Of a DNA stretch of 64,000 bases, positions 2,542 through 64,000 are shown piece by piece. The translations under genes were made by a program, and so were the position numbers. Each line of letters begins with the position of its first letter. The first letter of the stretch is position 1. Origin of the DNA: Lepidodermella squamata (taxonomy: Eukaryota; Animalia; Gastrotricha); contig JBLDXI010000007.1 in assembly GCA_047495785.1 (NCBI GenBank), positions 3,286,001-3,350,000 of the forward strand. Reading direction: 5' to 3'. Below the pieces are notes generated by a model, which saw nothing but the letters and a program-made list of their open reading frames with translations, was not told the origin of the DNA and ran no database searches.

Positions 2542-2957
2542 CAATCCTTAGTTTTTGATTTATTAGCTGCAAGGTTAAAGTCTTGAAAGAATCTGGTGTG
2601 AGAAAATGGTGCCAACGGTCGGATAAAATGTAGAGATAACGAGTCCTTAGCCCCTTGCGTTCCATTTTTATCGTGGGAATAAGCTGGGCGAAACACGATA
2701 AAAATGTGAACCTCGTTTAGAATAACTGATCTGATAGTTGAACCAACTTGTACTCACAGGTCACAGGTCCATGAACTGGTTCGAGGAAGATGGAGCGAAG
2801 TTATTTCTCCCAATAGATGTTCCTGTGCCGCAGCCTCTGCTTTTATTCTTTATAACTCTGGCTAACCTCACAAAATAATCAATCATATTTCGATCGATTT
2901 ATTGCTACGGAAAAATTTACATGAATCATGGGCTAATACTTTTCATCACCAGCTTGC

Positions 2958-3890: not shown

Positions 3891-6224
3891 CTATCGCATA
3901 TGAGATGCGAAATGCGGCATTCCGGCACGATGGCCGTCGTGCGTTGCAGATGGCCTATTTTGCGATGTAAAACCAGTATGTAAATGCTTAAGGAAAAAAG
4001 TGATCGTCCAGAGGAAAACAGACAGTAACCAGGCCATAATTGAAAGAGCCATCATTCTGCCTATCGGATGGCTTTCCAATACGAAATAAAGAAGAAGCGT
4101 ACCGTAGTAAATTGTTGTCAGAAAAACTGCTCCTAGTCTGATTGCGAAAAGTCTCTCGGCTTCAATATCTTTAATTTTCAGTCGCCTCAAATCATAAGAT
4201 AGCCACGAAGCGATGAGAAGACCTAAGCCAATGATTGCTATTAAAACTCCGAACCAGACCTCGGAATTGTCAGAATCAAACGCTTGAATTCGCCACGTGG
4301 TAAGCGTATCTGTTTCCGGATCATATGAATCGTGTAGTATCATCTTACTGTCAATCAATTTAGCGTTGTCTGCTGCAAACCATGTAACTAGATATGCCAC
4401 CGTGATTATCAAGCTACATGCTACGCAGCGATTTGTTTTATCACTATGCTGAGGCACAGACCCTGAACCGCTATTAGTTCTCAGTTGGCTACTAGTGTGA
4501 CAAAATCCTTCAGCAGCCCGAACGTTTTGTCTATGTTTCTGTTTGTAAGTAAGCAGCTGGCACAATATTGATGATACGCAAGCAACTAATGCTATAGAGG
4601 GAACTGTGATTTGAGAAATGAACAAGCTGAGAGATGATAGGAAAGTGCCAGGCACCGCCAAGAGAATGGCTGCGGAATTTAGTAGCATGCTGGAGATTAT
4701 TATGACCAGATTCGAGATTGAAATATCTCGCCTCCTCAATGAAAGAAACACAATTTGGGACACGGCTGTTGCGCTACAGATCGCTAGCATGCACCAGAAA
4801 AATTCATTTGATACTGACAATGTAGTAATGACCTCCTTCATCCTATCTCTTGGAGGCGAACTATCGCTGCTCGTCCAGTATGGGAGGAAAAGTGTTTTTA
4901 AGTTCGAGTAACTTGAAAGATTCATCGGTGAAGCCAGAGGGTCATTTCGTCGTATTGTATTCAAAACTCGCGGCCCAAATTGTTCCGTCCATTGAAAAGC
5001 CACGTAAATATCGTCATCTGGTTCTCCTCTTCCAGAGTACTGGAACTCGCCAATGCGGAGCCCGGCGTATCTAACGCTGAACATGGATTCGTTTGCCAGT
5101 TGCATAATCTCGCTCTGCTGAGCTCCGAAATCAGCAATCGACTTATTCATGAGCATTAACTTATTTTCCGTGTTGTTGAGAGCTACAAGAGCGGCTAGAG
5201 TTGCGTCATGGCAAAGGTTCCTGTTTAGGTAATCCGCGGGCATAACATCTCTAGACCCTCCCATGGCGACCCATTTATCACGAAAGATCAATTCGAACTC
5301 TGAGATATTGTAGCCAAGCGTTGTTTTCAGGCCGGGCATCAGAACGTTCTCCGTGGCCCAACCGACCCAAAAAGTCAGTTTATACTGCTCTAAGACCATT
5401 TTCTTGGTGCAGGTTTGACTTATTCTGTCAGGCATATTAGCAGGCTCGAAAAACAGCCCTGATACAGTAACGAAGGCGTATTTCGGTCCTCTCATTCCCA
5501 AGAGGTATGTTCGGCACATGAAGTTCATGAGATGGACTGCCATCGAAGTGAACAAGTTTACCACCCGTATGTCTTCCCTGATAAGACCTTGTATTGTCAG
5601 ATCGTCAATGTCGGAGACCAGATCAAAATAAGGTATCTCGAAATTATTACCATTTGCCTGAATCAGAATTTGAGATGCGGTCATATAGTCGGCAGGATTT
5701 TGAGTTGTCGTTAGTATTCCAAATCTATTCCATCCACCAACATCACGAGTGAATATCAATTGGGAATAGAGCAGCAAATCCTGACCAGCTCGAGCTCTGT
5801 ATAGGTTCTTGTATATTTTCCTTTGATTAGTCATTGCAGGGTGGTTGCAGCCGGTTGCTGATTGAACTAGGTTTAAATGGGACACAACAGGAGCTGCGGC
5901 CTTGCATCCACCAGAGAAAGTTGGACCGACGAAAATTGGGGAAAACACGCCATTTCTTTCCTTGAATTGAAGAAACCTTCGCGTAGTCATCGAAGCACCA
6001 GGTCCTTCGTCTTCAAATACCGGAGTCAAATGATACCCAGGCAATAGGTCCTTCTTCGCGTTGGCTGCTTCAATAGCAATTTGAGAAGCGATTATGCATG
6101 CCTCGGCTTTTCTTGGTTCATCACCCGTGATTGGGTACACGAAGAGTATTTGTAAGTCTTTGACCATCTTCGCGGTGATGCTGAAGTGTAATAGACATTG
6201 GATAATAAGCTTGAACAAATGCAT
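3891..6224 (-). CDS. Class C GPCR, GABA-B-receptor-like (Venus flytrap domain + 7TM), intronless, 777 aa
   Basis: Signal peptide. ANF-receptor-type motifs (IAIEAANAKKDLLPGYHL, VGPTFSGGC, YKNLYR, GWNRFGIL). W...PPRD stalk with no Cys-rich domain. Seven hydrophobic helices. Confidence 0.85.
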   Translation of the reverse strand: MHLFKLIIQCLLHFSITAKMVKDLQILFVYPITGDEPRKAEACIIASQIAIEAANAKKDLLPGYHLTPVFEDEGPGASMTTRRFLQFKERNGVFSPIFVGPTFSGGCKAAAPVVSHLNLVQSATGCNHPAMTNQRKIYKNLYRARAGQDLLLYSQLIFTRDVGGWNRFGILTTTQNPADYMTASQILIQANGNNFEIPYFDLVSDIDDLTIQGLIREDIRVVNLFTSMAVHLMNFMCRTYLLGMRGPKYAFVTVSGLFFEPANMPDRISQTCTKKMVLEQYKLTFWVGWATENVLMPGLKTTLGYNISEFELIFRDKWVAMGGSRDVMPADYLNRNLCHDATLAALVALNNTENKLMLMNKSIADFGAQQSEIMQLANESMFSVRYAGLRIGEFQYSGRGEPDDDIYVAFQWTEQFGPRVLNTIRRNDPLASPMNLSSYSNLKTLFLPYWTSSDSSPPRDRMKEVITTLSVSNEFFWCMLAICSATAVSQIVFLSLRRRDISISNLVIIISSMLLNSAAILLAVPGTFLSSLSLFISQITVPSIALVACVSSILCQLLTYKQKHRQNVRAAEGFCHTSSQLRTNSGSGSVPQHSDKTNRCVACSLIITVAYLVTWFAADNAKLIDSKMILHDSYDPETDTLTTWRIQAFDSDNSEVWFGVLIAIIGLGLLIASWLSYDLRRLKIKDIEAERLFAIRLGAVFLTTIYYGTLLLYFVLESHPIGRMMALSIMAWLLSVFLWTITFFLKHLHTGFTSQNRPSATHDGHRAGMPHFASHMR

Positions 6225-10493: not shown

Positions 10494-13124
10494 TTAGGCG
10501 GCAAAAACTACGAAGTATGCGTAGAAATTGACAGCAAGGAACAAGTCCATCGTCATGAGAAATGCAGCTAAATCAAAGGCCGTGGCGATACTGAGAGGTT
10601 TCAGACAAGATGACAACTCGCGCCTTCGATACATCATCCAAGGATGGTGAATCGTCATAGCGTACATAACCGTCTCGTATAACGTAATAACACCGGTTAA
10701 CCCAGCTAGAATTAGAATATACTCAGCCATTAGGACAGATTCCGACGTTTCAGGTATTTGTTGCATGACATCAGACTGAATGACGATCAAACTCAGGAGA
10801 AGGGTAGCAGAAAAGGCAGCCCGATCCGGCTTATCTGGCTGGAAGAGTAAAGACCCAAACACCAGCAACAGAATGATCAAAGACGGTGAAAGGCTGTTAA
10901 CCAAATATGGAGCTGATTTTCGGGAAAATGTGACGGTAAATCGAGCGTAGCCAGATGTTACTTTCCTCCTTATCAGCGATTTCATTATTCCATACACTGC
11001 TCTAGATGAATCCAGCTTCCACAACTCGCTTTCGAACGAACCATCAAAAGCCAGCTGAGCGCCACTGACGTTCAAAAACAAGTCAGACTCCTCGAGGACA
11101 AATGTGAAATCACATTGCTGCGAGTCGAACGGGAATTTTCGAAGCTTCAAGAGACACTGCGCATTAAAGATACCGAAACGAAACCAGTGGAAAAACATTG
11201 TTCGATTTGGCTTTGTTGGGTAGAAAACAATCTGAATCTGTTCTCGAAACCCGCTCTCCATATAGATATCGGTGGACGTGTTGGCAAACCGGAGGAAAGG
11301 CGTCCATACATCGCTCCTATCTACAGTGTAGATGCGTTCTGGGTCTGAAACCCCAGGAGCGGTGATGTCAGCCGGACAGGATGTAACAGCCCATTGAACC
11401 AATAAACAACCGCCGACGGATATCTCACGGGCTTTGGCGTCAATATCGACCAACCGCTGCAATTCCAGAGTCACGTAGACTTTTGTTCCATATGATGGAG
11501 ATCTGAAAATAAAGAACTAGAGAATCGCATATTCTAATCGCAAAACTTACTTGACTTGTGAACTTATGGATTTACAAGGCTTCATATCATCCGTAGATAT
11601 TTTAGGCAGAATGTTGCCATCTATCATTTCTGGAATTGGGAAGTTGTAGTCGTTTGGGTCAAATTGATAGGAGGCGTTAGGCTTGGCAGTTGAGACAACT
11701 ATAGTTGAACTACTGGTCGCAGAGGATGTTGTCTCTGTTGTTGTTGTGGTCGACGAGCTCGTTGAAGGACTTGTTGTAGTTGTCGTGGGATTTGTCGTCG
11801 GTGGTGATGTTGAGGAACTGGGCGGAGCTGTACTGCTTGACTGGGTGGAGCTTGATGTCGAGCTGGTTGAAAGGGGCGTGGAAGTCGTCGACGCCGTTGT
11901 TGTGGTTGTTGTAGGCTTAGTAGTTGTAGTTGTCGTAGTACTAGTTGACGGGGCTGTGGAAGTCGTTGAGGCTGTTGTTGTCGTAGTTGTGGGCTTAGTA
12001 GTGGTAGTCGTTGAAGTACTGGTTGAAGGTGTCGTAGAAGTCGTAGAAGCCGTTGTGGTCGTTGTTGTAGGCATTGTAGAAGTAGTTGTTGTAGTTGTCG
12101 TAGTCGTCGTGCTCGATGTTGAAGGGCTTGAAGCAAGGGTCCAGAATCGGAAATTCTTCATTTTATAGTACCCGTGATTATAACTGCAGAAGGTCATTGC
12201 TCTCAGCTTCACGTTCCCCGTTGCCAATGTATTTTTGAATCCAGTAATGCTCACGTCGCTGAAACACGGCGAGACCTGAGAGGCAGTGGGATTCGCGATC
12301 CCAACAGACAGTTTATCACCGTAAACTTGAATTATCAATTTGTAATTCGCGTTTCCGGTCGAGTCGAGGATGCTCCCGCCACAGCCTGGCGATGACGTAG
12401 CCGCAAGAGGTGAGCATGGCAGGCTGCAAGTCGAGGATGATGATGTTGTATGCCAAGCATAGGCTTTTCCGTTGGGCATCAGCTCTTGAAATACGCTCAG
12501 TCCCTGAACGTATTGAATTTCGTCATAGCAGCTGCCAGACCCTCCTGTGATTCACTCATATATTGGAAAAATAAGTCACTCAGGTTTAACATTACTCACC
12601 GGGATAATTAGGTGAAACACTTGAGAAAACCATTGCGAGCCAACCTTTTGAAGACGCAGTATTGCTGGCACTGTAAACGGCTGTTATATCCATTTCAGCT
12701 CGCCAGTTTGCAATAGTCGAATCAATATACTGGTCGAAATAAATTACGTTATCAACTTGAGTGTTTCCGAGATTATTGAATGGTGCGGCTGACCACTTAC
12801 CTGATCTGAAGAGATTCTGCCGTAGTCTGAAGAATCTCCAATATCACCTATTTGATACGCGTTGCCCAAATCAGTGGCATAATCATACAAAGATAAGGTC
12901 ATTGACTGCGAAACGCTTGAGTTCGCTTGATCGAATGAAAACGCAGATTGGTAGGTCGCAGTTCCCGAATACAAGTAGGGCAAGGGGAAGCTTGCAACGT
13001 CCGGAGTTGGGGTAATCGACGAACCTAGACATTTAATTTCAACAAAAACCAAACTAAATTTTAGCTGCAACCTACCTACACCACGGATGTAACACGCTAT
13101 CGCCAGAGAAAAGACTATATACAT
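10494..13124 (-). CDS. Stalked Cys-loop channel copy A (signal peptide, lectin-like domain, Thr/Ser stalk, LGIC), 801 aa
   Basis: Exons 13124-13076, 13024-12801, 12729-12600, 12544-11551, 11502-10494 (2406 nt, in frame, GT-AG). Cys-loop CLLKLRKFPFDSQQC; 4 TM. Confidence 0.9.
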
Positions 13125-16692: not shown

Positions 16693-16919
16693 TATTACTT
16701 TCTATGGTTATATTGAACACGTTTAGTGTCCATGCCGCGCCGGATATTGGAAATTGAAGCGGCTCGAACCATATAGCCAAAGTTATCAAGTTATTGCTTA
16801 GATTCCCGTGGTTCTACAGTAAAAAATGTTAATTTTTGATTTCATTGGGTTTTCGCGTACTTTCTGTTGGATTTCAATACAAGCCTAGAATACACTTTTT
16901 ATTTTTAAGCAGCAATAAA

Positions 16920-18102
16920 ATGAGAAACGTGATTATTGCAATAGTTGCTGCTACTCTGCTGAATTGTAGAGTCGCGGCCACACCGTTGAGCTATGAAACC
17001 GAAAACTATCTGAGAGAAAGATTCTTCGGCACTTGCCATGCTGACCTCGGATTCTACAACCATCAGATCAATTTAGACCTGCTCTTCTACGTATTTAACT
17101 TGGTCGAATTCGACGAACACGAAGAAACAATGACAATCTTCGCAACTCTCAACATTTGCTGGACTGATGACTGCGTCGCATGGGAAAAGGACCTGGCTAA
17201 AATTGCGCAAACAGCCTCGCCAAAAGTTGCGAAACAACTTGAAAGTTTGACTCACGTCGCTTTCCCAACGTCTTTGTTCTGGAAACCACCAATAATCCAT
17301 CGAAACAGTCCTTACAAGGTACAAAGCATTATTGAGAATGGCCAACAATTGACTACGAATGTTTTCAACTGGGCTGTACTCGACCTCGTGCACTCTGCAA
17401 CTAAAATGGTTCCCTTTCGACACCCAAACTTGCATGTTCGCCTTCGAGCTGTGGGACACGACCTACTACACGAACATCACCGCGGCTAATATTATGATTG
17501 ACGTCGAAAATCCCGAGGGTTTCACGAGTCCCATGGATGTGTGGCAACTGGAGAAGTACCACGGTGAGGTCGCAAAAACTTGCTACCCAATGGGCAGACC
17601 ATCTCAGCTAGTTTGCTCGGCTGAGGCTCATTACACGTTTGTAATCAGTCGAAAAGCTGCTCCATACGTCTTTGCTATCTTCCTGCCATCGATTTTACTT
17701 AATATCTTACAGTTAAGCCCTTTCGCAATGGAACCACACATGCCAGAGCGTTGCGAGTATTCAACGACGATTCTTCTAGCTTTCGCAGTTATCCATCAAA
17801 TGGTTGAGCAGGACATTCCGAAGACCGCTGAAACGATATATCTTGTTCTGTACATAAACGCTTGCCTTGTCGTCGGAGGTGTCTGCACGCTCTATTCTGC
17901 GTTAAGCATTGGACTGTGCAACTGGCTGGGAGATCGCAGAAAGAAGCCTAGAATTGTAACTATCCCGCTGCGTTGGAGCAACATCGCAAAAGAACCTTTT
18001 CAAATTCCTATTGTTCGCTTGATTGATCTGATTGTATTTTCAGTTTTAACCCTAACTGCTATTGCCATCAATGGCAGCTTTTTCTTAATGATTTGCGCTT
18101 GA
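16920..18102 (+). pseudogene. Intronless Cys-loop channel subunit with a frameshift near 17360 (pseudogene or assembly error)
   Basis: Frame 1 has the signal peptide MRNVIIAIVAATLL, WTDDCVAW and WKPPI. Frame 2 has CTLQLKWFPFDTQTC and 4 TM. There is no room for an intron at the junction, and the segment looks shortened. Confidence 0.75.
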
Positions 18103-18774: not shown

Positions 18775-21359
18775 TTAGTAGGCGGAAAAAGCAACGAGTG
18801 ACGCGTAAACATTGACTGCTAGGAAAGTGTCCATTGTAAAAAGGAAAGCAGCTAGATCAAAAGCTCGCGCGACACTAAGCGGTTTCAAGCAAGAATGCAA
18901 TTCTCGCTTCCGATGCATCATCCACGGATAGCGAATTGTCATCGCGTAAATAACCGTTTCGTACAGCGTAATCACCCCAGTGAGCCCAGCCATTATCAGA
19001 ATATACTCAGCCATGAGGACAGATTCTGAAGTTTCAGGAATCTGTTGCAAAACATCAGATTCAATCACGATCAAACTCAAGAGTAGGGTAGCTGAGAAGG
19101 CAGCCCGATCCGGGACATCTGGCTGGAATAGAAAAGACCCATATACCAGCAAGAGTAGGATAAGAGACGGTGCGAGACTGTTAACCAAATATGGACCAGA
19201 TTTTCGGGCAAATGTGACCGTAAATCGAGCGTATCCAGATGTCTGCTTCTTCCGCATGAGAGACCGTGTTGTTCCATACATCGAGCTTGCAGATTCAAGC
19301 TTCCACAGCTCACTTTCGAATGCGCCAACAAAAGCCAGCTGAGTGCCAGTCACGTTTAAGAATTGATCAGATTCCTCCAGGACAAATGTGAAATCGCATT
19401 GCTGCGAGTCGAACGGAAATTTACGAAGCTTCAAGAGACACTGAGCATTGAAGATACCGAAACGCAGCCAGTGAAAAAATAATGTACGATTTGGCGTGGT
19501 TGGATAGAAAACAATTTGAATCTGTTCGCGAAACCCGGTCTGCATGTAGATATCGGTGGACGTATTGGCAAATCGGAGGAAAGGAGTCCACACATCGCTC
19601 CTATCCACAGTGTAAATGCGCTCTGGATCTAAAACATCGGGTGCTGTGACGTCAGCTGGGCAAGATGTAACAGCCCATTGAACTAATAAGCAACCGCCGA
19701 CGGATATCTCACGGGCTTTGGCGTCAATATCGACCAAACGCTGCATTTCTAGAGTGACGTAGATTTGTGTTCCAAACGATGGAGATCTTCAATAATATAA
19801 AAATAGGTCGTGCAGGTTGCAAGTTTTCATTCAAAACTTACTTTGCCTGTGGACTTATGGTTTTGCATGGCTTTATATCCTCCACTGATAGCTTTGGCAG
19901 AATGTTACCGTCAATCATTTCAGGAATCGGGAAATTGTAGTCGTTTGATTCGAATTGATAGGTGGCATCAGCCAGAGTAGTTGATGCAACTTCAGTTGAA
20001 GTACTTGTCGCAGAGGATGTTGTCTCTGTAGTTGTTGCAGTCGAAGAGCTAGTAGAAGTTGTGGATGAGCTCGTTGTAGTTTTCGATGTTGAAGAACTAG
20101 ACGCAGCTGTACTGCTTGATTGTGTCGAGCTTGACGACGTTGATTGAGTTGTAGTACTGGTTGAAGGCGCTGTAGATGTCGCAGAGACGATTGTCGTTGT
20201 AGTCGTAGGCTTAGTTGTGGTTATTGTTGTAGAACTAGTTGATGGGGCTGTAGTCGAAGTCGACGGTGCCGTGGAAGTCGTCTCGCCTGTTGTTCTGGTA
20301 GTCATAGGATTTGTGGTTGTTGTTGTAGTCGTAGTAGTGCTCGATGTTGAAGGGCTTGAAGCAAGAGTCCAGAATCGGAAATTCTTGATATTATAGTAGC
20401 CGTGATCATCATAACTACAAAAAGAGATTGCCCTCAGCTTCACATTCCCTGTTGCTAAGGTAGTTTGGAATCCATTAATGCTCACGTCGCTGAAACACGT
20501 CGAGACCCGAGAGCCACTTGGAGACGCGATCCCAACAGACAGCTTATCGCCGTAAACTTGAATGATCAACTTGTAATCCACGTTTCCGGTCGAATCGAGG
20601 ATACCTCCGCCACAGCCTGGCGATGACGTTGCCGCAAGGGGTGAGCATGGCAAGCCGCAACTCGAGGATGTTGGTGAGGTTGTGTGCCACGCATAGGCCT
20701 TGCCGTCGGGCATCAGCTCTTGAAATACGCTGAGGCCCTGGACGTTTAAAATTCTGTCAAGGCAGTCATAACCGCCTGGAATCCACTCAAATAGGAAAAT
20801 GTCAGTTAATTACTCGCTTTCACTTACTAGGGTAAGTAGGCGAAGCACTCGAGAAAACCATTGCGAGCCAAGCTCTTGAGGACGCATTGTTGCTGGCGCT
20901 GTAAATCGCCGTGATATCCATTTCAGCTCGCCAGTTTAGAGCGGTCGAATCAATGTACTAATATTACATTTATGAGTTCTTTCATTGGAGACTAAGGAAC
21001 CCTTCCGCCCGACTGTTGGGCTTATACTTACCTGGTCCGAAGTGATTCTGCCGTAATCTGCCGCGTCCGCAATGTCTCCTATTTGATAAGCGTTGCCCAA
21101 ATCATCGGAGTAAGGATACAAAGATGGTGACATAGACTGCGAAACGCTTGAATTTTCTTTATCGAAAGATAACGCTGACTGGTAAGACGCGGTCCCTTCA
21201 TACAGGTAAGGTAAAGGAAAGCTCGCAACATCAGGAGTTGGGATGATCGTTGAACCTAGAAGCGTCGTTATCTAATATATAATCTATGAAGGGTGCTACA
21301 TGGAACCTACCAATGCTACTGAAGCAAGTGGTTATGGTCAGCAAAATGATCAGGTTCAT
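18775..21359 (-). CDS. Stalked Cys-loop channel copy B, 782 aa
   Basis: Exons 21359-21311, 21255-21032, 20957-20828, 20775-19842, 19786-18775 (2349 nt, in frame). Same architecture as copy A. Confidence 0.9.
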
Positions 21360-24661: not shown

Positions 24662-27150
24662 TTAGTAGGCGGAAAAAGCGACAAATGATGCATAAACATT
24701 GACTGCAAGGAATGTGTCCATTGTAATCATGAAAACAACTAGATCAAAGGCTCGGGCGATACTGAGCGGTTTCAAGCAAGAAGGCAATTCTCGCTTCCGA
24801 TGCATCATCCACGGATAGCGAATTGTCATAGCGTACATAACTGCTTCGTATAACGTGATGCCACCAGTTAATCCAGCCATGATCAGAATATACTCAGCCA
24901 TCAAGACAGATTCTGACGTTTCAGGAATCAGTTTCATAACATCAGATTCAATGACAATCAAACTCAAGAGTAGGGTAGCTGAGAAGGCAGCGCGATCCGG
25001 AACATTTGGCTGGAATAGCAACGACCCAAATACCAGCAAAAGTAGGATCAGAGACGGTGCGAGACTGTTAACCAAATACGGAGCCGATATTCGTGAAAAT
25101 GTTACCGTAAATCGAGCGTAGCCTGATGTAAGCTTCTTCCGCATAAGAGACCGTGTCGTTCCATACATCGAGCTTGCGGATTCAAGCTTCCACAGCTCAC
25201 TTTCGAATGAGCCATCAAAAGCCAGTTGAGTACCAACTACAGTTAAAAATTGATCAGATTCCTCGAGAACGAATGTGAAATCACATTGCTGCGAGTCGAA
25301 CGGAAATTTACGAAGCTTCAAGAGGCATTGCGCATTCAAGATACCGAAGCGGAACCAGTGGAAAAACAATGTACGATTGGGCGTTGTTGGGAAGTATACA
25401 ATTTGAACCTGTTCTCGAAACCCGGTTTCCATATAAATATCTGTAGACGTATTGGCAAATCGGAGGAAAGGGGTCCATACATCGCTCCTATCCACAGTGT
25501 AAATGCGTTCTGGGTCTGATACGCCGGGCGCTGTGATGTCAGCTGGGCAAGATGTAACAGTCCACTGAACTAATAAGCATCCGCCGACGGATATTTCGCG
25601 AGCCTTAGCATCGATATCGACCAAACGCTGCATTTCTAGAGTGACGTAGATTTGTGTTCCGAAAGATGGAGATCTGTAACAATTCAGATATTGGTCATAA
25701 CAGATTATCATCGCAATACTTACTTCGCCAGTGGGCTTAAAGATTTGCAAGGCTTGATGTCGTCCGTAGATATTTTAGGCAGGATGTTACCGTCTATCAT
25801 TTCAGGAATCGGGAAATTGTAGTCGTTCGACTCGAATTGATAAGTAGCTTCAGCTTTTGTTGTTGGCGCAACTTCGCTAGAAGTACTGGTCGCAGTAGAT
25901 GACGTCTCTGTTGTAGTCGAAGTGCTAGTGGAAGGACTTGTAGAGCTTGTGGATGGACTAGTTGTTGCTTGCGATGTTGATGAGCTGGACGCAGCTGTGC
26001 TGCTTGAACGTTTTGAGCTTGATACTGTTGATTGAGTTGTAGTGGGTTGCGTTGTAGTACTGGTTGAAGGCGCAGTTGATGTCGTAGAAGCCGTTGTTGT
26101 GGGAGTCGTAGGCTTAGTAGTCGTGGTTATCGTAGTAGTGGTAGTCGTAGTGCTCGATGTTGAAGGGCTTGAAGCAAGAGTCCAGAATCGGAAATTCTTC
26201 ATATTATAGTAGCCGTGATCATAACTACAAAAAGAGATTGCCCTCAGCTTCACATTTCCCGTTGCTAAGGTAGTCTGGAATCCATTAATGCTCACGTCGC
26301 TGAAACACGTTGAGACCTGAGAGCCACTTGGAGACGCGATCCCAACAGACAACTTATCGCCGTAAACTTGAATAATCAATTTGTAATTCACGTTTCCGGT
26401 CGAGTCGAGAATGGTCCCACCACATCCGGGTGATGACGTTGCCGCAAGGGGTGAGCATGGCAGGCTGCAAGTCGAGGATGTTGCTGAGGTTGTATGCCAA
26501 GCGTAGGCTTTTCCATTGGGCATCAGCTCTTGAAATACGCTCAGTCCCTGAACGTATTGAATTGTGTCAAAGCAGCTATCGTAGCTGCCTGAAATCCACT
26601 CACATTAATGACAAATTCACCTCATGAATCAACTTAACTCACTGGGGTAATTAGGCGAAACACTGGAGAAAACCATTGCGAGCCAAGCTCTTGAGGAAGC
26701 GTTGTTGCTCGCACTGTAAACAGCTGTTATATCCATTTCAGCTCGCCAGTTCAAAGCAGTCGCGTCAATATACTAAAAGTAAAAGGATGAGACGAATAAA
26801 GAACTCTTTCGAACGTCGGTTTGTTTTACCTGATCTGAAGAGATTCTGCCGTAGTCTGAAGAATCCCCAATGTCTCCTATTTGATACGCATTACCCAAAT
26901 CGTCGGCGTAAGTATACAAAGATAGGGTCATAGACTGCGAAACGCTCGAATTTGCTTTGTCGAACGAGAATGCTGATTGGTAAGACGCGGTTCCAGCATA
27001 CAGGTACGGTAACGGGAAGCTCGCAACGTCGGGAGTTGGTGTGATCATCGATTCTAGAAACTTCTATGATTTTAGGATTAAAAATGCCAGCAGTGACTTA
27101 CCAATGCAACTGATGCACGCCATTAATGTCAGCGAAATGAGTAGATTCAT
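24662..27150 (-). CDS. Stalked Cys-loop channel copy C, 759 aa
   Basis: Exons 27150-27102, 27053-26830, 26772-26643, 26588-25724, 25673-24662 (2280 nt, in frame). Confidence 0.9.
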
Positions 27151-28947: not shown

Positions 28948-31693
28948 CTAACCGAACGCAACAACTACAGCGTAAACATTAAGTGTTAAAAAAATGTCAA
29001 TGGCTAGAAAGAAGGCTGCCACGTCCATAGCTCGAGCGCAGCTCATGCCAGTCTTTCTTGATAAAAACTCAGTTTTCTTGTTCATAACTACAGGAAAGTG
29101 ATAGATCAAAGCGACCAGGATTGCCTGATACATGGTTATCATTCCGGACAGCCCACACAGCCCTAGGATATACTCAGTAAGCAAGGCACGCTCCGACGTC
29201 TCAGGAATCTGATTCATAATGCCCGATTGAAGGACAATCATACTCAACAGCAAGCAAACAGAGAAAGAAGCTCGATCAGCATTATCAGGCTGAAAAATCA
29301 ATGAACCGACAGCTAGCGCCGCAAGGAGAAGACCTGGACTCAATAAGTTGATCAAATACGGCGTCGGCTTTCGTGAAAAATCGACAGTGAATCGAACAAA
29401 GCTCGACGTTTGATTCTTGCGAAGAAGAGATTTTGTTATTCCAAAACGAGATGCAGTAGAATCGAGCCGCCACATCTCGCTTTCGAATGATTCGCCAAAG
29501 TCAAGGTCAGACCCCGCAACTTCCAGGAATCGATCGGACTCCTCGAAGATGAACGTGAAATCACATCGCTGTGAGTCGAATGGGAATTTCCTCAATTTAA
29601 GTTGACACTGAGCAGTTAGGATGCCATATCTCAGCCAGTGGAAAAACAGCGTTCTATTCGGCGAAGTTGGGTAGTAGACAATTTGAACTTGCTCCCGTAA
29701 GCTTTCGTGCATATAGATGTCGGTTGAGGTGTTGGCGAAACGAACATAGGGCACCCAAACCTGAGCCCTATCGATTGTATACACACGCTCAGCTGCATCG
29801 ACATTCGGAGCTGTTATTTCCTGGGGACAATTTGAAACCATCCATTGTAAAGCTAAGCTTCCTCCCACTGAGATCTCCCTAGCTTTAGCGTCGATATCGA
29901 TCAGACGATAGAGCTCGAGCGTCGCATATATTTTTGTTCCAGCACTGGGAGATCTTCAACGTAATGATATGATGCACCATTTGGAAAAATTAGAAAGTTA
30001 CTAACCTGACATTTGGATTGATGTACATACAGGGCATGAGGTCTGAGACAGAAATGAGAGGGATGATATTGCCCTCTATGAGATCGGGAATCGGGAAATT
30101 TGTGCTGTTTGACTTGAACGTGAATGTTCTTTGCTCCGTTGGAGCTGTTGTAACCGGCCGTCTCGATGCATGAAAGCCGATTTTAGAACCTGAGGGAATA
30201 GTTGTACGAGTCGGCGATGTTCTAAGAGTTGAAGTTGAAGGCGAACTGGAAGTTGAAGTTGCCGATAAGCTTGCTGTTAATGTTGATGATGATGAACTTG
30301 ATGTGTCCGCTGATGACGTTTCTAGTGGTGATGTTCCAGCGGAGCTTTTCGAGGTCGTTGAAGTTACTGGGGATGCCATTGTTGTAGAAGTAGAGGATGA
30401 TATCGCTGAGGTCGAGGTTGATGTTTGCTTGTTTGTCGACGTCGTTGTTGCTGCTGAGGTTGTACTTGATGCTGGAACTGTCGTAGTGGAAGGAGAAGAT
30501 GAAGACGTCGAGGCTGAAGTTGGAGCAGCGGTCGACGTCTTTGTTGATGTCGTCGTTGAGCTCGAGGTTGAAGATGTGGTTGTAGACCGTGTTGTTGTGC
30601 TGGATGAGGTTGGGACAGTCGTGGTAGTAGAACTTGAAGACGGCTGAGTTGTTGTTGATGACGACGGCGTAGAGGTCGTAGTCGCGCTGCTGCTTGATAG
30701 TTTCCAAACGTAGAATTTCTTCATGATGTAATGTCCGTGATTATAAAAGCAATAAGCAAAAAAACGGAGTTTCATATTGCCGCTGGCTACCAAGGTTGAA
30801 AACCCAGAGATGTTAACGTAGTCGAAGCACGTGGACGCGGCTTGACCGTTAGCAACAGGAGCAATCGCTACCGTGAGGAGATCGCCGTAAACTTGCATTA
30901 TGAGCCGAAAATTCACTGAGCCCGAGGAGTCAAACATAGAACTGCCGCACCCCGGCGCGGAAGTAGCCACAATCGGGGAGCAGGGTAATTGGCATGTTGA
31001 ATTGACCGTCGTTGGACTGTAGAAGGCATGGAGCCTGCCGTTGGGCATCAATTCTTGCCAAAGGCCAAGGCCACTAGTATCACTAATAACGTCATAGCAG
31101 CCAACATTGTCGACTAGCGCAAAATTATTCATGAATATTGTTCTTACTTCAGGGAAATATTTCTGTTTTACCCGGATAAAATGGTGACGTACTGGAAAAC
31201 AACAAACCAAGCCAACCTTTGCTTGAGTTGGTGTTAGCCGCGTTGTAAATCGCCTTAATTTCCGTTTCTGCCCTCCAATTCACTAGCGTCGTAGTAAAAT
31301 ACTATGGGCAAAATTGAATAGGAATAGTAACTCATAACGTCACTGCCTCACGTTATCAGAGCTGATTCGTCCGTAGTCGTTGCTGTCATTCATGTCCCCG
31401 AGTTGATACGCCGTCGGGAGATCGTAACTAGTGTCGTATAGGACGAACGTACTCGAACCAGCAATGCTCAAATTCGATTTATCAAAAGAAAGCGACGCTT
31501 GGTATGTTGCGGTTCCGGCGTACAAATATGGCAGCGGTAAAGTGGCCGTGTCAGGAGTAGGAATAATTTGGCAAACTATGAATTTGAATGCTTCGTAGTA
31601 AGAATTTCAGAGACTGTGATACATACCGGTTGACATTATGAGATTTAACGTGAAAATATCTTGAAGATATTTTGATTTGCCTGAGTTAATCAT
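28948..31693 (-). CDS. Stalked Cys-loop channel copy D (subfamily 2), 844 aa
   Basis: Exons 31693-31627, 31575-31352, 31301-31172, 31113-30006, 29953-28948 (2535 nt, in frame). Cys-loop CQLKLRKFPFDSQRC. The signal peptide is weak, but exon 1 is conserved with copy F. Confidence 0.87.
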
Positions 31694-34525: not shown

Positions 34526-34792
34526 TTTCAGTCTACATTTCGTTCGTGTTGCGACGTAAGAAACCCACCGTATCCAGGTATATATATAATACAGCCGTGT
34601 AGAGGATTTAGTGATAGGATGTTCTCCAGGTATGCAAAATCATAGCATCGTAAAAGCGCAATAAAGATCCGGCGCTCTTGCACGTAATGACTATAATCAC
34701 GGTAATGAGTATCAGTGCGTTCTCTTGGACTGTTCTCAACTGAGAATTTTTGTATCAGACTAATAAAAGTTCACAATTGTTTCGATTTTGTC

Positions 34793-49237: not shown

Positions 49238-51825
49238 TTAGTTGGCTGAGAAAGCGACAAATGATGCATAAGCATTCACTGCAAGGAATGTATCCATTGT
49301 GAACAGGAAAGCAGCTAGATCAAAGGCTCGGGCGATGCTGAGAGGTTTCAAACAAGAAGGCAACTGTCGCCGTCGATACATCATCCACGGATAGCGAATC
49401 GTCATAGCGTACATTACTGCTTCGTAAAACGCGACGCCACCAGTTAATCCAGCCATAATCAAAATATACTCAGCCATCAGGACAGATTCAGACGTTTCGG
49501 GGATCAGTTGCATAACATCAGATACAATAACGATCAAACTCAAGAGTAGGGTAGCTGAGAAGGCTGCTCGATCAGGCACATTCGGCTGGAATAGCAACGA
49601 CCCAAATACCAGCAATAGAAGGATCAGTGACGGTGCAAGGTTGTTCACTAAATATTGGCCGGATTTTCGAGAAAATGTGACTGTGAATCGAGCGTATCCG
49701 GATGTCTGCTTCTTCCGCATAAGAGACCTCGTTGTTCCATACATCGAGCTAGAGGATTCCAAGTTCCACATTTCGCTCTCGAACGAGCCATCAAAAGCCA
49801 GCTGAGTCCCACTGACATTCAAAAACAAATCAGATTCCTCGAGGACAAATGTGAAATCACATTGTTGCGAGTCGAACGGGAATTTACGAAGTTTCAAGAG
49901 ACACTGAGCATTCAAGATGCCGAAACGTAACCAGTGGAAAAACAAGGTACGATTGGGCGCTGTTGGGTAGAAAACAATCTGAATCTGTTCTCGAAACCCG
50001 GTCTGCATGTATATATCTGTGGACGTGTTGGCAAATCGGAGGAAAGGAGTCCATACATCGCTCCTATCCACGGTGTAGATGCGCTCTGGATCTGAAACTC
50101 CGGGCGCTGTAATGTCAGCTGGACAAGACGTAACAGCCCATTGAACCAGCAGGCAACCGCCAACGGATATCTCGCGAGCTTTGGCGTCAATATCGACCAA
50201 ACGCTGCATTTCCAGGGTGACGAAGACTTGTGTTCCAAAAGATGGAGATCTTCATTAAAACAGAAATAGTTCATTACATTTCATCATCGAAAACTTACTT
50301 AGCCAGGGGACTTATGGATTTGCAAGGCTTCATATCCTGCGTAGATATTTTAGGCAGAATATTGCCATCTATCATCTCCGGAATGGGAAATTTATAGTCG
50401 TTTGACTCGAAATCGTAGGTAGCTGCGGCCTTTGTAGTTGATACAACTTCAATTGAAGTACTGGTCGCAGAAGATGACGTCTCTGTGGTAGTCGAAGAGC
50501 TAGTGGGCATACTCGTTGAAGTTGTGGATGAACTCGTTGTTGATCTCAACGTTGAGAAACTAAACGCAGCTGTACTGCTTGATCGGCTCGGGCTTGATTG
50601 AGTTGTAGTCGGAAGCGTTGTAGTGGTGGTTGTAGTGGCTGTTGTTGAAGGCGATGTAGATGTCGTAGGGACGGTTGTGGTGGAAGTTGTAGGCTTAGTA
50701 GTCGTAGTTGTTGATGTACTGATTGAAGGTGTCGTAGAAGTCGTAGAAGCCGTTGTAGTCGTAGTTGTAGGCATAGTAGAAGTAGTTGTTGTTGTAGTCG
50801 TAATCGTAGTGCTCGATGTCGAAGGACTTGATGCGAGAGTCCAGAATCGAAAGTTCTTCATATTATAGTAGCCGTGATCGTAGCTGCAGAATGTCATCGC
50901 TCGCAGCTTAACATTCCCAGTGGCTAAGGTAGTTTGGAATCCAGTGATGCTCACGTCGCTAAAACACGTAGAGACCTGAGAGCTCGTAGGGGACGCGATC
51001 CCAACAGACAACTTATCACCGTAAACTTGAATGATCAATTTGTAATCCACGTTTCCGGTCGAATCGAGGATACCTCCGCCACAGCCAGGCGATGACGTTG
51101 CCGCAAGGGGTGAGCATGGCAGGTTGCAAGTAGTGGATGTTGGTGAGGTTGTATGCCAAGCATAGGCTATTCCGTTGGGCTTCAGCTCTTGAAATACGCT
51201 CAGTCCCTGAACGTTTTCAATTTGATCAAAGCAGCCGCTGTACGAGGCTGTGATCAACTTACATCATAAAAAACAGTTCGTGGTCAAATTTAACTAACCG
51301 GGGTAAGTAGGCGAAACACTCGAGAAAACCATTGCGAGCCAAGCTCTTGAAGAAGCATTGTTGCTTGCACTGTAAATTGCCGTTATATCCATTTCAGCCC
51401 GCCAGTTTAGAGTAGTCGAATCAATGTACTTTTATTAAAAAGGTGAACTCTTCAGTGATGTATAAAAAGCCCTTTCGCACATCGGTTGGGCTTACGCTTA
51501 CCTGGTCTGAAGAGATTCTGCCGTAGTCAGACGTATCGCCAATGTCTCCAATTTGATACGCGTTGCCCAAATCAGTGGCATAATCATACAACGACAGTGT
51601 CATAGACTGCGAAATGCTCAAATCCGATTGATCAAATGAAAATGCAGATTGGTAAGATGCGGTTCCCGCATACATGTAGGGCAAAGGGAAGCTCGTAACG
51701 TCGGGAGTTGGTGTAACCGCCTCACCTATAACCTTATTGAATATAAACTAAAACGCAAATCCTAGCTGTAACCTACCTATCCAAACGATGCAGGACGCTA
51801 TCGTCAGCGAAATGAGTAGATTCAT
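49238..51825 (-). CDS. Stalked Cys-loop channel copy E, 787 aa
   Basis: Exons 51825-51777, 51725-51502, 51428-51299, 51247-50299, 50249-49238 (2364 nt, in frame). Confidence 0.9.
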
Positions 51826-56300: not shown

Positions 56301-57893
56301 AAAGTGTATTTTCTTTGCTCTAATGGAGCTGTAGTGATGGATAGTGTCGATGAATGGGTGGCAATTTTCGATGTTGGGGGAATAGTAGTAGATGCAGGCA
56401 ATGTTCCAACAGCCGAAGTTGAAGGTAAACTTGAAGTTGAAGGGAGATTGGTCGATAAGCTCGTCGGTAATGTTGATGAGAGGGATGTACTTGAAGTGCC
56501 TGCTGCTGAAGTTCCAAGAGGTGATGTTCCAACTGGGTTTTTCGTGGTCATTGAAGTTGTCGACGTTGGAACTGTCGTTGTTGAAGAAGTGGAGGAAGTC
56601 GCCGTGGTCGAAGTTGAAGTTGGCTTAGTGGTCGACGTCGTAGTTGCTGTTGAAGTTGTACTTGATGCTGGAGTAGTCGTAGAAGAAGTAGATGATGACG
56701 TTGCCTCGGTCGATGTTAAAGTTGGCGAAGTGGTAGAAGTCGTTGTTGACGTTGAAGTTGAACTCGAAGTTGAAGTAGTCGTCGAACGTGTTGTTGTGCT
56801 TGATGAGGTTGGGACAGTCGTAGTGGAACTTGAAGAGGATTGACTTGTTGTTGAAGGTGTAGACGTTGATGTCGTAGTCGCGCTGCTGCTTGACAGTTTC
56901 CAAAAGTAAAGGTTTTTCATGAAGTAATGTCCACGATTGTAGAAGCAATAAGCAAAAAAACGGGATTTCAAACTGCCACTTGCCACCAAGGTTGATAAGC
57001 CAGTGATGTTAATGTAGTCGAAGCAAGTGGACGCTGCCTGACCTTTAGTAACAGGAGCAATCGCTACTGTGAGAAGATCGCCGTAAACTTGCATAATAAG
57101 CCGAAAATTCACTGAGCCCGAGGAGTCAAATATTGAACTACCGCATCCAGGTGCAGAAGTGGCCACAACTGGGGAGCAGGGAATTTGGCAATTTGAAGTG
57201 ACCGTCGTTGGACTATAGAAGGCATACAGCTTGCCGTTGGGCATCAATTCTTGCCACAGGCCAAGGCCACTGATATCACTAATAGCGTCGTAGCAACCAA
57301 TATTGTCGACTATAGTAAACAATTTTTAGTGATAATTGCTCTTTCTTGAGGGAAATATTGCAATCTTACACGGGTAATTTGGCGATGAACTGGAAAACGT
57401 TAAACCAATCCAACCTCTACTTGAGACAGTGTTAGCCGGGTTGTAAATCGCTTTGATTTCCGTTTCTGCCCTCCAATTCACTAGCGTCGTAGTAAAATAC
57501 TATGGACAAAATTAAATAGGAATAGTAACTCATAACGTGACTGCCTCACATTATCCGAGCTGATCCGTCCGAAGTCGCTGCTGTCATTCAGGTTACCGAT
57601 CTGATACGACGTCGTGAGATCGTAACTAGTCTCGTATAGTGTCTGCGTATTCGATCCGGCAATGCTTGAATTCGATTTATCGAAAGAAATCGACGAGTCG
57701 TATGTCGCGGTCCCGGCGTACAAGTACGGAAGCGGAAAAGTTGCCGTATCAGGGGTAGGAATTATTTGACAAACTGTAAATGCGAATAAATCGTATTTAA
57801 TGAAAAACGAAACAACAGCTAAGATATACCGGTGGACATAACGAGATTTAACGTAATAAGATTTTGAAGGTATTGTGATTTGCCTGTGTTCAT
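53348..57893 (-). CDS. Stalked Cys-loop channel copy F (subfamily 2), 847 aa; intron 4 holds a 1.8-kb transposon
   Basis: Exons 57893-57830, 57773-57550, 57499-57370, 57309-56190, 54353-53348 (2544 nt, in frame). Confidence 0.87.
54375..56160. mobile_element. Non-autonomous Tc1/mariner-type element in intron 4 of copy F
   Basis: TA-CAGTGCTCCCTCG...CGAGGGAGCACTG-TA. The homologous intron is ~50 nt in the other copies. Confidence 0.9.
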
Positions 57894-59168: not shown

Positions 59169-62100
59169 TCAGAATGCTACCATAGCAGCATAAACATTGA
59201 CAACAAGGAAAATGTCGAAGTATAGGAAAAAGGCTGCCAGATCGAGTGCTCGAGCGTAGCAGAGCTTTGTTATCCCAACAGAAACCTTGACCTTCTTCGA
59301 CATCAAGTACGGAAACTTGACGGTGACAGCAAGCATCACGGCCTCATACAAAACGATAATTCCTGTGAGGCCAGATAGGATCAAAATATACTCAGCCATA
59401 AGAACTGACTCAGCTGTATCAGGAATCAGCCCTAGGACATCAGACTGGATCACAATCATGCTCAGTAGAAGAGTTCCAGCAAATGCTGGACGATCAGGAA
59501 CATCCGGCTGAAAGATGAGTGATGAAAAGCCCAACGTCATGAGGATTGAACATGGCGCAATGGAGTTGATGAGATACGGTATCGGCTTGCGAGCAAAGGC
59601 AACAGAAAATCGCGTGTAACCAGAAGTACCGTTCTTTCTTAGCAGGGAGTTTGTAGTTCCAAAAACCGAGGTCGACGACTTCAACTGCCACATTTCGCTC
59701 TCGAAAGAACTAGGTATATCAAGTCGAACCCCTCCGAACGATACTAATCTATCAGATTCATCAAGGGCAAATGTAAAATCACAGGTTTGCGAATCGAAAG
59801 GAAATTTCCGAAGCTTCAAGACACATTTCGAACGGAGTATACCAAACCTCATCCAATGGAAAAACAACGTGCGATTAGGCGTGGTTGGGTAGTAGGCTAC
59901 ATGAATTTGTTCTTTGAAGCCATTCTCCAAGTAAAGATCCGTGGTTGTATTGGTGAATCGCATGCTTGGGACCCACAACTGCTTCCTATCAACAGTGTAA
60001 ATGCGATCAGCATCATCAACATTTGGAGCTGTAGTCGCGCTGGGGCAGATCTTGACGACCCATTGAACAACCACACTGCCTGCTATCGAGATTTGCCGAT
60101 ACCGAGCATCGATATCGTTTAATCTATCCATTTCGAGAGTAAGGAATACTTTCGTCCCGGCAAGAGGGGATCTTGTAAAGGACAAGTCAATTTTTTTACA
60201 GTAGTTTCATACACAGTTACCTGTTCACAGGGTCGATGAACTTGCACGTTTTCAATTCGTCGATTTCAATTATTGGAACGCTGTCTCCATCGATCAAGTT
60301 AGGAATCAAGAATTCTGAGCTATTAGTCACGAAGTCGTAGGTTCGAGGTGCCAGAGTTGTTGGCACGCCAGTGGTTGAGGCAGAAGGCTCCAGCCTCCAT
60401 ATTCTGAAATTCGATACAGTCGCATCTCCACTGGCCCCGTTGATTCCGTAGAGTTGAATATTCGCGTTTCCACTGGCGATTTGATTAGCACCGAGGCCAG
60501 ATGCGTTGGCATTGGTAAAGACAATCGTACTGGATGTATCCCCATAACCGGGCAAAGGTACCAGAGCAACCTTATGAAAAAATATTGAAATTCAAGAGGA
60601 ATCAAGGATATGAAAGTGTTATCTAACAGAAACTTGATCGTTAACACTTTGAACGAGCCAGAGCTGTTGAAAATGTTCGTTATCGTAATAGATTCATAAT
60701 CATAGGACAGCGGAACAGTTTGGCTGATGTTCACCATATCGGCATCATAGGCCAGGAAAAGTTTACCATCTACGCCGATTTGAAGCGCGATATGGAGTCC
60801 ATCATAGTTGCTGAATGTGTCTGGACCTGTCATGGCTCTCTTTTTACGACCCAATGCAGATGTAGCTGAAAGGTATTTAAATTACGAAAATAGAACAATT
60901 TATAAACTAGTTTGAACTTACAGACTGTCGCAGGCGATTTCGTGATTGCGAAGACATGATACCCGTAAGAATTCGCAGTTGGGTCAAATTTCGAACTCAC
61001 ATCCATTTCTACTCGAAACGGCACCGAAGCCAGTTCAGTCGGTAGCGTTTGGTCTAGCTTTGCTGAGCCAAACTCGCGTACAGGATAGGAATTGAGAACG
61101 ATCCCAGTTTCATCATTCACAGCACTTGGCATGACATGGAAATCAGCAGTTGCATTGATCGTGTCATTCGTATCGTAAGACAAATGGCCTAGAAAGGTAG
61201 GCAGCCCAGACCAAAGGTAAGGCAACGGAAGGGACTGGACGTCAGGGTCTGGAATCAGATAGCCGGGCATTACGGTCGTGGTTGTAGTAGAGGTGGTTTT
61301 CGTTGTTGTGGTTGAAGATGTTGATGTGCTGGGCGTAGTCGTTGTAGTCGTGGGCTTAGTTGTCGTAGTCGTTGTTGTCGTAGTAGTGGGTGTGGTTGTG
61401 GATGTGGAGGAAGTCGAGGTTGTCGGTGTGGTTGTCGAGGTCAGCGTAGAAGTCGCGGTCGTAGTGGGCGTGGTCGAAGTTGTTGTTGTTGTTGTCGTCG
61501 AAGTCGTAGATGAAGTTGCGGTCGACGTAAGGCTTGTTGTTGGCGTGGTAGATGGCGTTGTAGTAGTCGTCGTTGAGCTAGTCGATGTAGTAGTAGAAGT
61601 AGTCGCTGGACTCGCTGCCAAATTCCAAAAGTAGAAATTTTTTATTCGGGCAACTCCAGTATTCATCCCACAGAATAGATTCAGCCGAAGCTTAGTATTG
61701 CCATTTGACGTAATAGCGTTCAACCCAACAACAGCTACGTCTTGAAAGCAAGTAAATGCCTGTGGACTGCCACTGATTGGAAGAGGAACCATCACAATCT
61801 GTTTCGACATGGCAATAAAATGATTTCAAGCATTATTGATACTACTCAAAGGTCGAAGGGTGGCTGAGCGAGCGTAGCAGAAAAGTGAGTTGCGCTGCAG
61901 AGTGAACGTAGCAGAAATCAAAACAGTGTAGCAACAACGCGTGTTTAGTAGCACTCAAACGCAATCCGTCGCGCATTCATCTAATCCGCTGCGTAAACGA
62001 GTGATATGACGCGGCAGGCGGTGCGACGGTCGCAAAAATAAGGGTGAACGTAGCAATTTGATCAAAACTGAATTTGGTAAAAAGTTGTTATATTATGGAC

Positions 62101-64000
62101 GAAGCCGACAGAAATTTCTTATCTGGCATAGACAACACTGTAACAGATAGGAAGCAAACGATCTTTGTATAGTGACTTTATATTCGAGCTGAATTCGCAA
62201 AGATGCGACACGCGACCACTTTATGCCGCCTAACGCCCGTTAAAAATTCAATTATTTAAAAAAAATCGACAGACGAAATAATCAATGTCAAATTTGTTGT
62301 GTTTTGGCGGATAAATACTAGATTTCTCGCGGTCTATCGAATGAGCCCAGCTAATCTTGCAGGCTCTCATAATTAATTTTCTAGCATTTTTGAAAACAGC
62401 TGTCTTTGCTGGTTTACGACAACTTTGCCACTCTTCTGCCGCGGTTGGCTTATCCGGAAATTTTCTGAAAATTTTCTGAAAATTAGTTTTTTCATGTTGA
62501 GAATCGTCTCTATCTGTCGATTTTATGGTCTATACCATGGAGGAATAGAAACTTTTACTGTTCTTCCATCGTTATAGTCATTCGATTGTGCGCGACGTGC
62601 GCGCTGGAGACTCAAGCGGGTATCAAAATCTCCTCATAGCGATTTTTCTCCGCAAGACTAGATACTTACGGTCTTGTAACATGTCTTGTCCAACAACAAT
62701 AAAAATCACACCGGTAAAGCGTGGCCAGGAGTGGATATCTAGGCAGGTAGCTATGACTTGGCGATGATTCACGTTTTGAGTTTTACAGGTGAGCGACTGC
62801 GTCGGATGAAAAGTCGCAACAGTATATAAATAATATTAATACTAATCTTTTCATTTAGTCAATGTCTATACCGATAAACGGTTTTGAAGAGGGCGAAGGC
62901 TGGCGAAAAGATAGAAATCACCCACCCCCTCAGTTGAAGATTCTACTTTTTCCGAGAAATTCATAATCATTAATTTTGTTAACAATCATGTGTTAACAAA
63001 AGTCGCAGGAGTATATAAAAATACCTAAAATATCTACTAAAAATACCTTAGTTTTTCGAGCTCTATCCGAAAAAAATGTTTCACGATGATCTGAAAACAT
63101 GGGTTGGGTAGTCGGTCAAATTGACATGGAATTGCCCCAATTCAATTTTGTTTGAATTATTCAAATAAATGTTTTAAATAATCTGTAATTATAACTTTTT
63201 CGACTTGCTACGTTCACTCAGATTTTTGCTACGGTACTTCAGATTTGCTACATAACACCGGGTGGTGCTACACTCGCACAGATTTTGAGCGCTCGTTGCG
63301 CTTCTCCTAATTCTGCTACACTCACTCAGGTTTTCGCAGCGCTCACCATTTAACTCAAGGTCGAATGGGAACGAAAGGAAAATTGTCTAATTTAACAATC
63401 CGATTTGAACTAAGGATACTGGGGTATAGAAATCGATAGGAAATGTTTCTATCAAAGCAGCTCGAAGGTGAGCTTACTGTCAATAGGTCGTTAGCAACTT
63501 GTAGTATCAGTCTGTACGTGCTTGTCCCACTGGAAGTGAATAACCCGGCACCTCCGCCTCCACAGGCTGCCGCCGATGTGTAATAGGGGATGCAGGGGAT
63601 AGTGCACGCAGTTGTGATTCCAGTTGGTTCGAAGTGCACCATGGTCCTTCCGTTGGTTTTCAACTCTTGAAGAATGTTGAGTCCATGAATGTTGTTGATC
63701 TTCTCGTAGGAACAACCAGAGGTAACTGAGCGAAATAGATGTCTTTAGCGAAGATATTATAATTATATTAAAGATTATTCCTTGCCATAAGTAAGAGAAG
63801 CAGCCGACAATAAGATGGATAGCCATCCTGGCTGGGCTGCTGCTGTGTTGTACGTTGCCGTTATATCCATTTCTGCCCGCCAGTTTTGAGCTGTGCCTGA
63901 GGCTAGGAACTTCAATTCGTAAACAAAGCCTGATTACAGACATTTTTAACGGGTATTTTTGCAGATAACCTGGCTGGATGATATTCGCCCAAAGTCTGCT
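59169..64000 (-). CDS. Stalked Cys-loop channel copy G with two lectin-like modules; 5' end lies outside the window
   Basis: Exons >64000-63970, 63909-63786 (GC donor), 63725-63478, 61798-60922, 60865-~60648, 60570-60221, 60171-59169. Cys-loop CVLKLRKFPFDSQTC. The junction near 60640 is uncertain. Confidence 0.75.
61858..63356. mobile_element. Mutator-like non-autonomous element in an intron of copy G
   Basis: Perfect 9-bp flanking duplication AAGGTCGAA (61849-61857 / 63357-63365). Inverted subterminal motifs GTGAACGTAGCA / TGCTACGTTCAC. Confidence 0.7.

Follow-up and report, generated by a model that had tools for sequence, protein, structure and literature searches.

Organization of the Locus

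In a 64,000-nucleotide stretch of the genome of the gastrotrich Lepidodermella squamata (GenBank assembly GCA_047495785.1, contig JBLDXI010000007.1, positions 3,286,001 to 3,350,000 of the forward strand; hereafter the window, whose own numbering is used for all coordinates), a tandem family of genes encodes predicted Cys-loop channel subunits that carry an uncatalogued head domain on a mucin-like stalk. Three-frame translation combined with a DNA alignment of six paralogs identifies the first of these genes, copy A, as a five-exon gene on the minus strand (13124..10494) with a product of about 801 aa. The segment 12130-13024, for which an earlier reading of the same DNA (hereafter the original prediction) had proposed the fold of L-type lectins such as ERGIC-53, VIP36 and the legume lectins, extends from exon 2 through the final residue of the head and includes two short introns.

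All five exons of copy A are on the minus strand. Exon 1 (13076..13124) begins with the ATG at 13124 and encodes a hydrophobic N-terminus of 16 codons plus one base, a leader taken here as a signal peptide; its donor (G/GTAGGT, the slash marking the exon boundary here and below) occupies a position common to paralogs B, C, and E. Exon 2 (12801..13024; acceptor tctag/GT, donor CAG/GTAAGT) comprises 74 codons and encodes the N-terminal third of the head, the middle of which is encoded by exon 3 (12600..12729), with a phase-0 acceptor (..CCAG/TAT). The start of exon 3 is settled at 12729 (..SSDQ/YIDST..) and the nearer AAG is ruled out because the six-paralog DNA alignment fixes this junction. 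Exon 4 (12544-11551) encodes the C-terminal half of the head (12132..12544; 137 aa, alignment A1), followed by the mucin-like stalk of about 150 aa (11679..12131) and by a linker from stalk to channel (11551..11678, containing ..YQFDPNDYNFPIPEMIDGNILPK..), which is conserved in all copies and ends at a phase-2 donor (AA/GTAAGT). Exon 5 (10494..11502), with the stop codon at 10496-10494, encodes a complete Cys-loop channel subunit. The four introns, of 51, 71, 55, and 48 nt, are of the GT..AG type; two of them, 12800-12730 and 12599-12545, lie within the head, and the 48-nt intron 11550-11503 connects exon 4 in frame with exon 5. The head accordingly consists of exons 2 and 3 together with 137 codons at the start of exon 4, about 255 residues in all.

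A tblastn search finds six head-plus-channel genes, copies A to F, all on the minus strand, as well as a further gene, G, in which two diverged heads precede the channel exon. The head of copy B (exons 2-4) is located at 20360..21247 and its channel exon at 19782-18781; the respective minus-strand coordinates are 26173..27045 and 25669-24668 for copy C, 30695..31564 and 29949-28951 for copy D (about 50-62% identical to A), 50832..51717 and 50245-49244 for copy E, and 56891..57765 and 54349-53351 for copy F. The two tandem heads of gene G (60388..63909, minus strand) are arranged in the order G1, stalk, G2, followed by the channel exon at 60167-59172. G1 (63909-61616), which an intron of about 1.6 kb interrupts, runs off the end of the window; in G2 (61258-60388) the equivalents of exons 2 and 3 are fused into one exon, and additional introns divide the C-terminal half. 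Stalk and channel are separated in copy F by a much longer intron (about 1.75 kb; 54400-56160, minus strand) than in the others, where it measures about 50 nt, and this long intron may contain an insertion.

The splice sites are conserved among the copies, and the phase-2 junction into the channel exon, with canonical sites, is found in all seven (A to G). Reading the head straight through the introns was considered and rejected, given that hand inspection reveals an in-frame stop or a frameshift in every intron of every copy; even those introns of copies C, E, and F whose lengths are divisible by three contain stops. No intron-less head is present within the 64-kb window.

Conservation and Motifs of the Head Domain

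The original prediction was built on seven short strings in a fixed order, and all seven are indeed found in that order on the minus strand, the first two in exon 3, namely NWRAEMDITAV (12708-12676) and KGWLAMVF (12648-12625), and the other five in exon 4, namely VQGLSVFQE (12509-12483), PGCGG (12389-12375), YKLIIQVYGDKLSVGI (12344-12297), PCFSDVSI (12269-12246), and YKMKNFRFWTL (12167-12135).

Among copies A to F, the mean column identity of the head exons is 77-82%, with 82% for exon 2 (alignment A2) and 81% for exon 3 (alignment A3). The ratio of nonsynonymous to synonymous substitution rates (dN/dS) is 0.12-0.22 for the head, summed over its separate exons, vs. 0.08-0.12 for the channel exon. 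Because the paralogs are so similar, the splice sites are conserved and dN/dS is low, the head is, as judged from the sequence, a genuine coding module under constraint and not a chance pattern.

The pattern Q-E-L-x-P-x-G that follows the GLSVF strand is invariant in copies A to F. Exon 2 encodes an acidic loop, G-D-x-x-D-x-x-D-Y/F-G-R-I-S/T-S-D (12801-12860, minus strand), which is largely conserved in the same six copies, the second and third Asp being invariant and the first replaced by Asn in F; the loop, which is absent from G2, could be a candidate metal site. The only N-x-S/T sequon of the head is also located in exon 2. A partial-row alignment intended for folding the N-terminal half of G2 (A4) was rejected because MAFFT aligned the latter half of exon 2 with the region of exon 3.

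The six cysteines of the exon-4 half are invariant in copies A to F and retained in G1, and could form up to three disulfides. In G2, all six are missing, along with much of the Cys-rich loop. Because a head without any of these cysteines exists, the putative disulfides would decorate the fold rather than be required for it.

The Stalk and the Channel

Of the 152 aa of the stalk of copy A, 87.5% are Ser, Thr, or Pro, and the stalk includes a tandem repeat (11866-12095) with a period of 78 bp and 2.9 copies. The stalks of copies B to F are 109-193 aa long and contain 75-80% of these three residues.

Exon 5 matches the Pfam family PF02931 above the family cut-off (E 3.2e-07) and, weakly, PF02932 (E 0.056). 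In translation, it can be read as a ligand-binding domain with a C-x13-C loop that contains FPFD, followed by hydrophobic membrane segments; the loop between the third and fourth of these segments is very short, at only about 20 residues, a feature also of the family's bacterial members. The domain profile, the C-x13-C loop with FPFD and the membrane segments assign exon 5 to the Cys-loop (pentameric ligand-gated) channels, and seven such channel exons are present within the window. The channel exon is highly diverged, such that a word search among proteins of 184-585 aa retrieves a single relative, with 24% identity. In the gene model, the head forms the outermost end of a Cys-loop channel subunit, located after the predicted signal peptide and mounted on the stalk, and a receptor pentamer would show five heads.

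The window also contains a Cys-loop channel gene on the opposite strand (16836-18102, plus strand), which is about 30% identical to the headed channels and matches both PF02931 and PF02932. No head or stalk exons are seen beside this gene.

The Fold of the Head

The head was searched and modeled exon by exon, a procedure with a sensitivity below that of a search with the whole domain. In the comparison of protein-atlas language-model features, the best named neighbors of the exon-4 half are PelX_N, GH43_C2, DUF1961, 3keto-disac_hyd/LamG, GH59_C, and DUF6250, with scores of 0.92-0.95, and seven of the 10 best named matches in this search (recognition 2562) belong to a single clan, the Concanavalin-A-like (ConA-like) one. 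AlphaFold, run on single exons, predicts seven strands and one 6-residue helix for the exon-4 half, with a poor predicted local distance difference test score (pLDDT) of 44.6, and one beta hairpin plus coil, without any helix, for exon 2 alone (pLDDT 47.9). On these models, the head appears to be almost wholly beta-stranded and is possibly ConA-like. The pattern at the end of the head, G-x-hydrophobic-x-hydrophobic followed by F-R-x-W-x-L, resembles the last strands of ConA-like domains, a likeness that we infer from the motif.

Taking these indications together, we propose, with a modest leaning in its favor, that the head adopts the jelly-roll beta-sandwich fold of the ConA-like lectin/glucanase superfamily. 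The likeness to other families of the ConA-like clan, namely LamG/LNS, pentraxin (pentraxins have a ConA-like fold), 3keto-disac_hyd/DUF1080, GH43_C2, and DUF1961, lies in the features, by which they are nearest to the exon-4 half; none of them is matched at the level of hidden Markov models (HMMs). The head also exceeds the LamG, pentraxin, and DUF1080 domains in size, and the kinship lacks statistical support.

A number of observations weigh against the proposal of a ConA-like head in a spliced receptor gene. The splice model is read from the DNA alone, and the sole public sequencing run that contains this stretch is itself DNA, with contigs that traverse the introns and show no joints. In Pfam, hmmscan at E<=10 finds no relevant family with exons 2, 3, and 4 of copy A, the six exon-4 heads, the head of copy D or five pieces of G1 and G2. 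No chain of the PDB is matched at E<=10, either by the six-copy profile of the exon-4 half (A1) or by the N-terminal half of G2. A phmmer search with the 137-aa exon-4 head against 1.84 billion representative proteins yields 0 matches at E<=0.001, a word search among proteins of 182-579 aa finds no relatives of the head, and a scan of metagenome contigs with the conserved peptides likewise retrieves no relative. Finally, the atlas neighbors of exon 4 share only 111-135 of 256 features with it, as is usual for distant relatives or chance similarity.

Such matches to the head pieces as do appear in Pfam are irrelevant and below threshold. One of them, to DUF7431 (E 0.081; cut-off 27 bits), was dismissed given that it spans the last strands of the head and continues into the stalk. 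At HMMER sensitivity, the head domain is a sequence orphan. What the sequence does fix is the gene model and a real, constrained domain; the label of lectin comes without sequence-level evidence.

The structure searches are to be read with the quality of the models in mind. With the low-pLDDT exon models, Foldseek gives no match at E<=0.001, and in the shape search of the atlas all matches are below a template modeling (TM) score of 0.5. Because the exon models are poor (pLDDT 45-48), these fold searches amount to noise. ConA-like entries (LG/LNS domains, pea lectin, pentraxin, and GH16) recur in both structure lists, at noise level only.

Alternative Interpretations

The alternative that survives best is that the head has an all-beta fold outside the ConA-like superfamily, such as a galactose-binding-like, a TNF/C1q-like or a new fold, or a pair of Ig-like domains, and that the motif likeness is a generic pattern of beta-strands. 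We consider this unlikely. It is consistent with the lack of a significant match, in sequence or in structure, to anything in the searches made, with the low counts of shared features that underlie the atlas scores, and with the top VIA and Foldseek rows, which are unrelated beta proteins. The atlas matches of the N-terminal half, as represented by G2, point the same way, being mixed and all below 0.9 (DUF6772 at 0.87, DUF6645 at 0.84, DUF4627, and calreticulin at 0.78). Against a fold outside the superfamily stands the concentration of the best named atlas neighbors of exon 4 in the ConA-like clan and, at noise level only, the recurrence of ConA-like entries in the structure lists.

A narrower version of the ConA-like proposal, and the one made in the original prediction, assigns to the head the fold of the L-type lectins in particular (ERGIC-53/VIP36/legume), with the disulfide of that family and a remodeled site for sugar and Ca2+. 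The families concerned, Lectin_leg-like and Lectin_legB, are similar to the head in size (about 230-255 aa), in being all-beta and in their luminal or extracellular location, and a domain of about 255 aa fits the L-type lectins better than it fits LamG or pentraxin. The strand-like motifs follow one another in an order and at distances that appear to resemble those of ERGIC-53, as do two Cys, separated by about 39 residues, that flank the YKLIIQVYGD-KLSVGI hairpin. However, no profile match to L-type lectins is found at HMMER sensitivity when the exon pieces are compared to Pfam at E<=10, nor is any other family or, for the exon-4 profile and the N-terminal half of G2, any PDB chain matched at the same threshold, and the atlas neighbors of exon 4 are other ConA-like families, with no L-type lectin family among them. 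Furthermore, L-type lectins have one Cys pair and the Asp of the sugar site, whereas the heads have six cysteines on a Cys-rich loop or, in G2, none, so that the family does not always have the disulfide. The specific L-type assignment accordingly appears doubtful. On the original prediction's own terms, under which the absence of a profile match would refute it, the assignment fails at HMMER sensitivity. The all-beta, ConA-like part of the original prediction is weakly favored by the atlas features and the AlphaFold strands; its L-type part is left without support.

The altered sugar site is a conditional result. The original prediction described the canonical Asp-Gly motif as apparently replaced in copy A, and at the proposed position copies A to F have S-K/R-G/A-W, G1 has P-G-W, and G2 has Y-G-Y. 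An Asp is absent from this position in all eight heads, as predicted; the position itself is placed by an unverified alignment to L-type lectins, and the alteration matters only if that alignment is right.

The remaining alternative, that the exons do not form a working gene and represent instead an array of pseudogenes, a wrongly joined model, or a protein of head and stalk that is made apart from the channel, draws on the DNA-only origin of the gene model and on an in-frame stop three bases past the proposed donor of the stalk exon, and is very improbable in the face of the open frames, canonical splice sites and identical phase-2 channel junction in seven copies, the strong purifying selection on both head and channel, and the fact that the channel exon would have no signal peptide of its own if the upstream exons were removed.

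Possible Function of the Headed Receptors

Under the preferred reading of the head as a ConA-like beta-sandwich on a channel subunit, the head family would be lineage-specific, with no model in any catalog, and the head probably binds, on the outside of the cell, a glycan or some other macromolecule. Direct allosteric coupling between head and channel is unlikely because the stalk is long and probably O-glycosylated. A more likely role for the head, we propose, is to capture, tether, or position the channel at a surface or matrix that bears the ligand, and the channel would keep its own gating site.

A stronger form of this scenario can also be formulated, in which the head is a lineage-specific binder, with either a new fold or a ConA-like fold with a new site, and its engagement with a glycan, a microbial surface, or the matrix controls the channel by clustering, by tension on the tether or by relief of occlusion. 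We regard this combination as improbable. If head engagement did control the channel, the tandem family would represent a class of ionotropic receptors whose ligands are macromolecules or surfaces and not small transmitters. More generally, should the head be a lectin-type binder, these genes would be candidate ion channels for the sensing of surfaces, glycans, or particles, and the head would define a new domain family.

Comparison With Known Receptors

Two kinds of channels with additional extracellular domains are instructive for comparison. The lobster genome paper describes 66 Cys-loop receptors to which C-type lectin, pentraxin, and LDLa domains are added, and considers them the first such receptors (Polinski et al., 2021; PMC8221624). 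As in the present case, these chimeric receptors are animal Cys-loop subunits with added lectin-type extracellular domains and form an expanded gene family (PMC8221624). The add-ons of the lobster receptors, however, are recognizable Pfam/SMART families and no mucin stalk has been described for them, in contrast to the uncatalogued head, the Ser/Thr/Pro stalk and the diverged channel of the gastrotrich genes. The lobster is thus the one precedent that we found for lectin-type add-ons on animal Cys-loop receptors, and the gastrotrich genes vary it in a new way, with an uncatalogued head and a mucin stalk.

N-terminal accessory domains are also a feature of some prokaryotic members of the channel superfamily, and the two jelly-roll lobes of DeCLIC are the sole characterized case (PMC12664993, PMC9897478). 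Papers on channel structure report such domains from bacterial members alone (PMC12664993). DeCLIC is similar to the headed receptors in having an all-beta N-terminal accessory module on the same channel superfamily, a module that in DeCLIC modulates gating. The N-terminal domain of DeCLIC differs in that it is prokaryotic, packs directly on the extracellular domain without a stalk and binds Ca2+, and no sequence relationship between it and the head was found. A text search for terms denoting extra domains found none in an evolutionary survey of the family (PMC4795631).

Other Genes in the Window

The two halves of the channel array flank three consecutive open reading frames (ORFs) of 300-341 aa (33173-36604, plus strand), which have no Pfam match and may represent a mobile element. 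Near the start of the window, a 546-aa ORF (904-2544, minus strand) encodes a MACPF (perforin-like) domain (PF01823, E 4.9e-26) and, C-terminal to it, a Cys-rich region. Two long single-ORF genes, at 3891-6224 on the minus strand and at 41413-43911 on the plus strand, encode an ANF_receptor ligand-binding region with hydrophobic segments after it and look like receptors of the class-C type.

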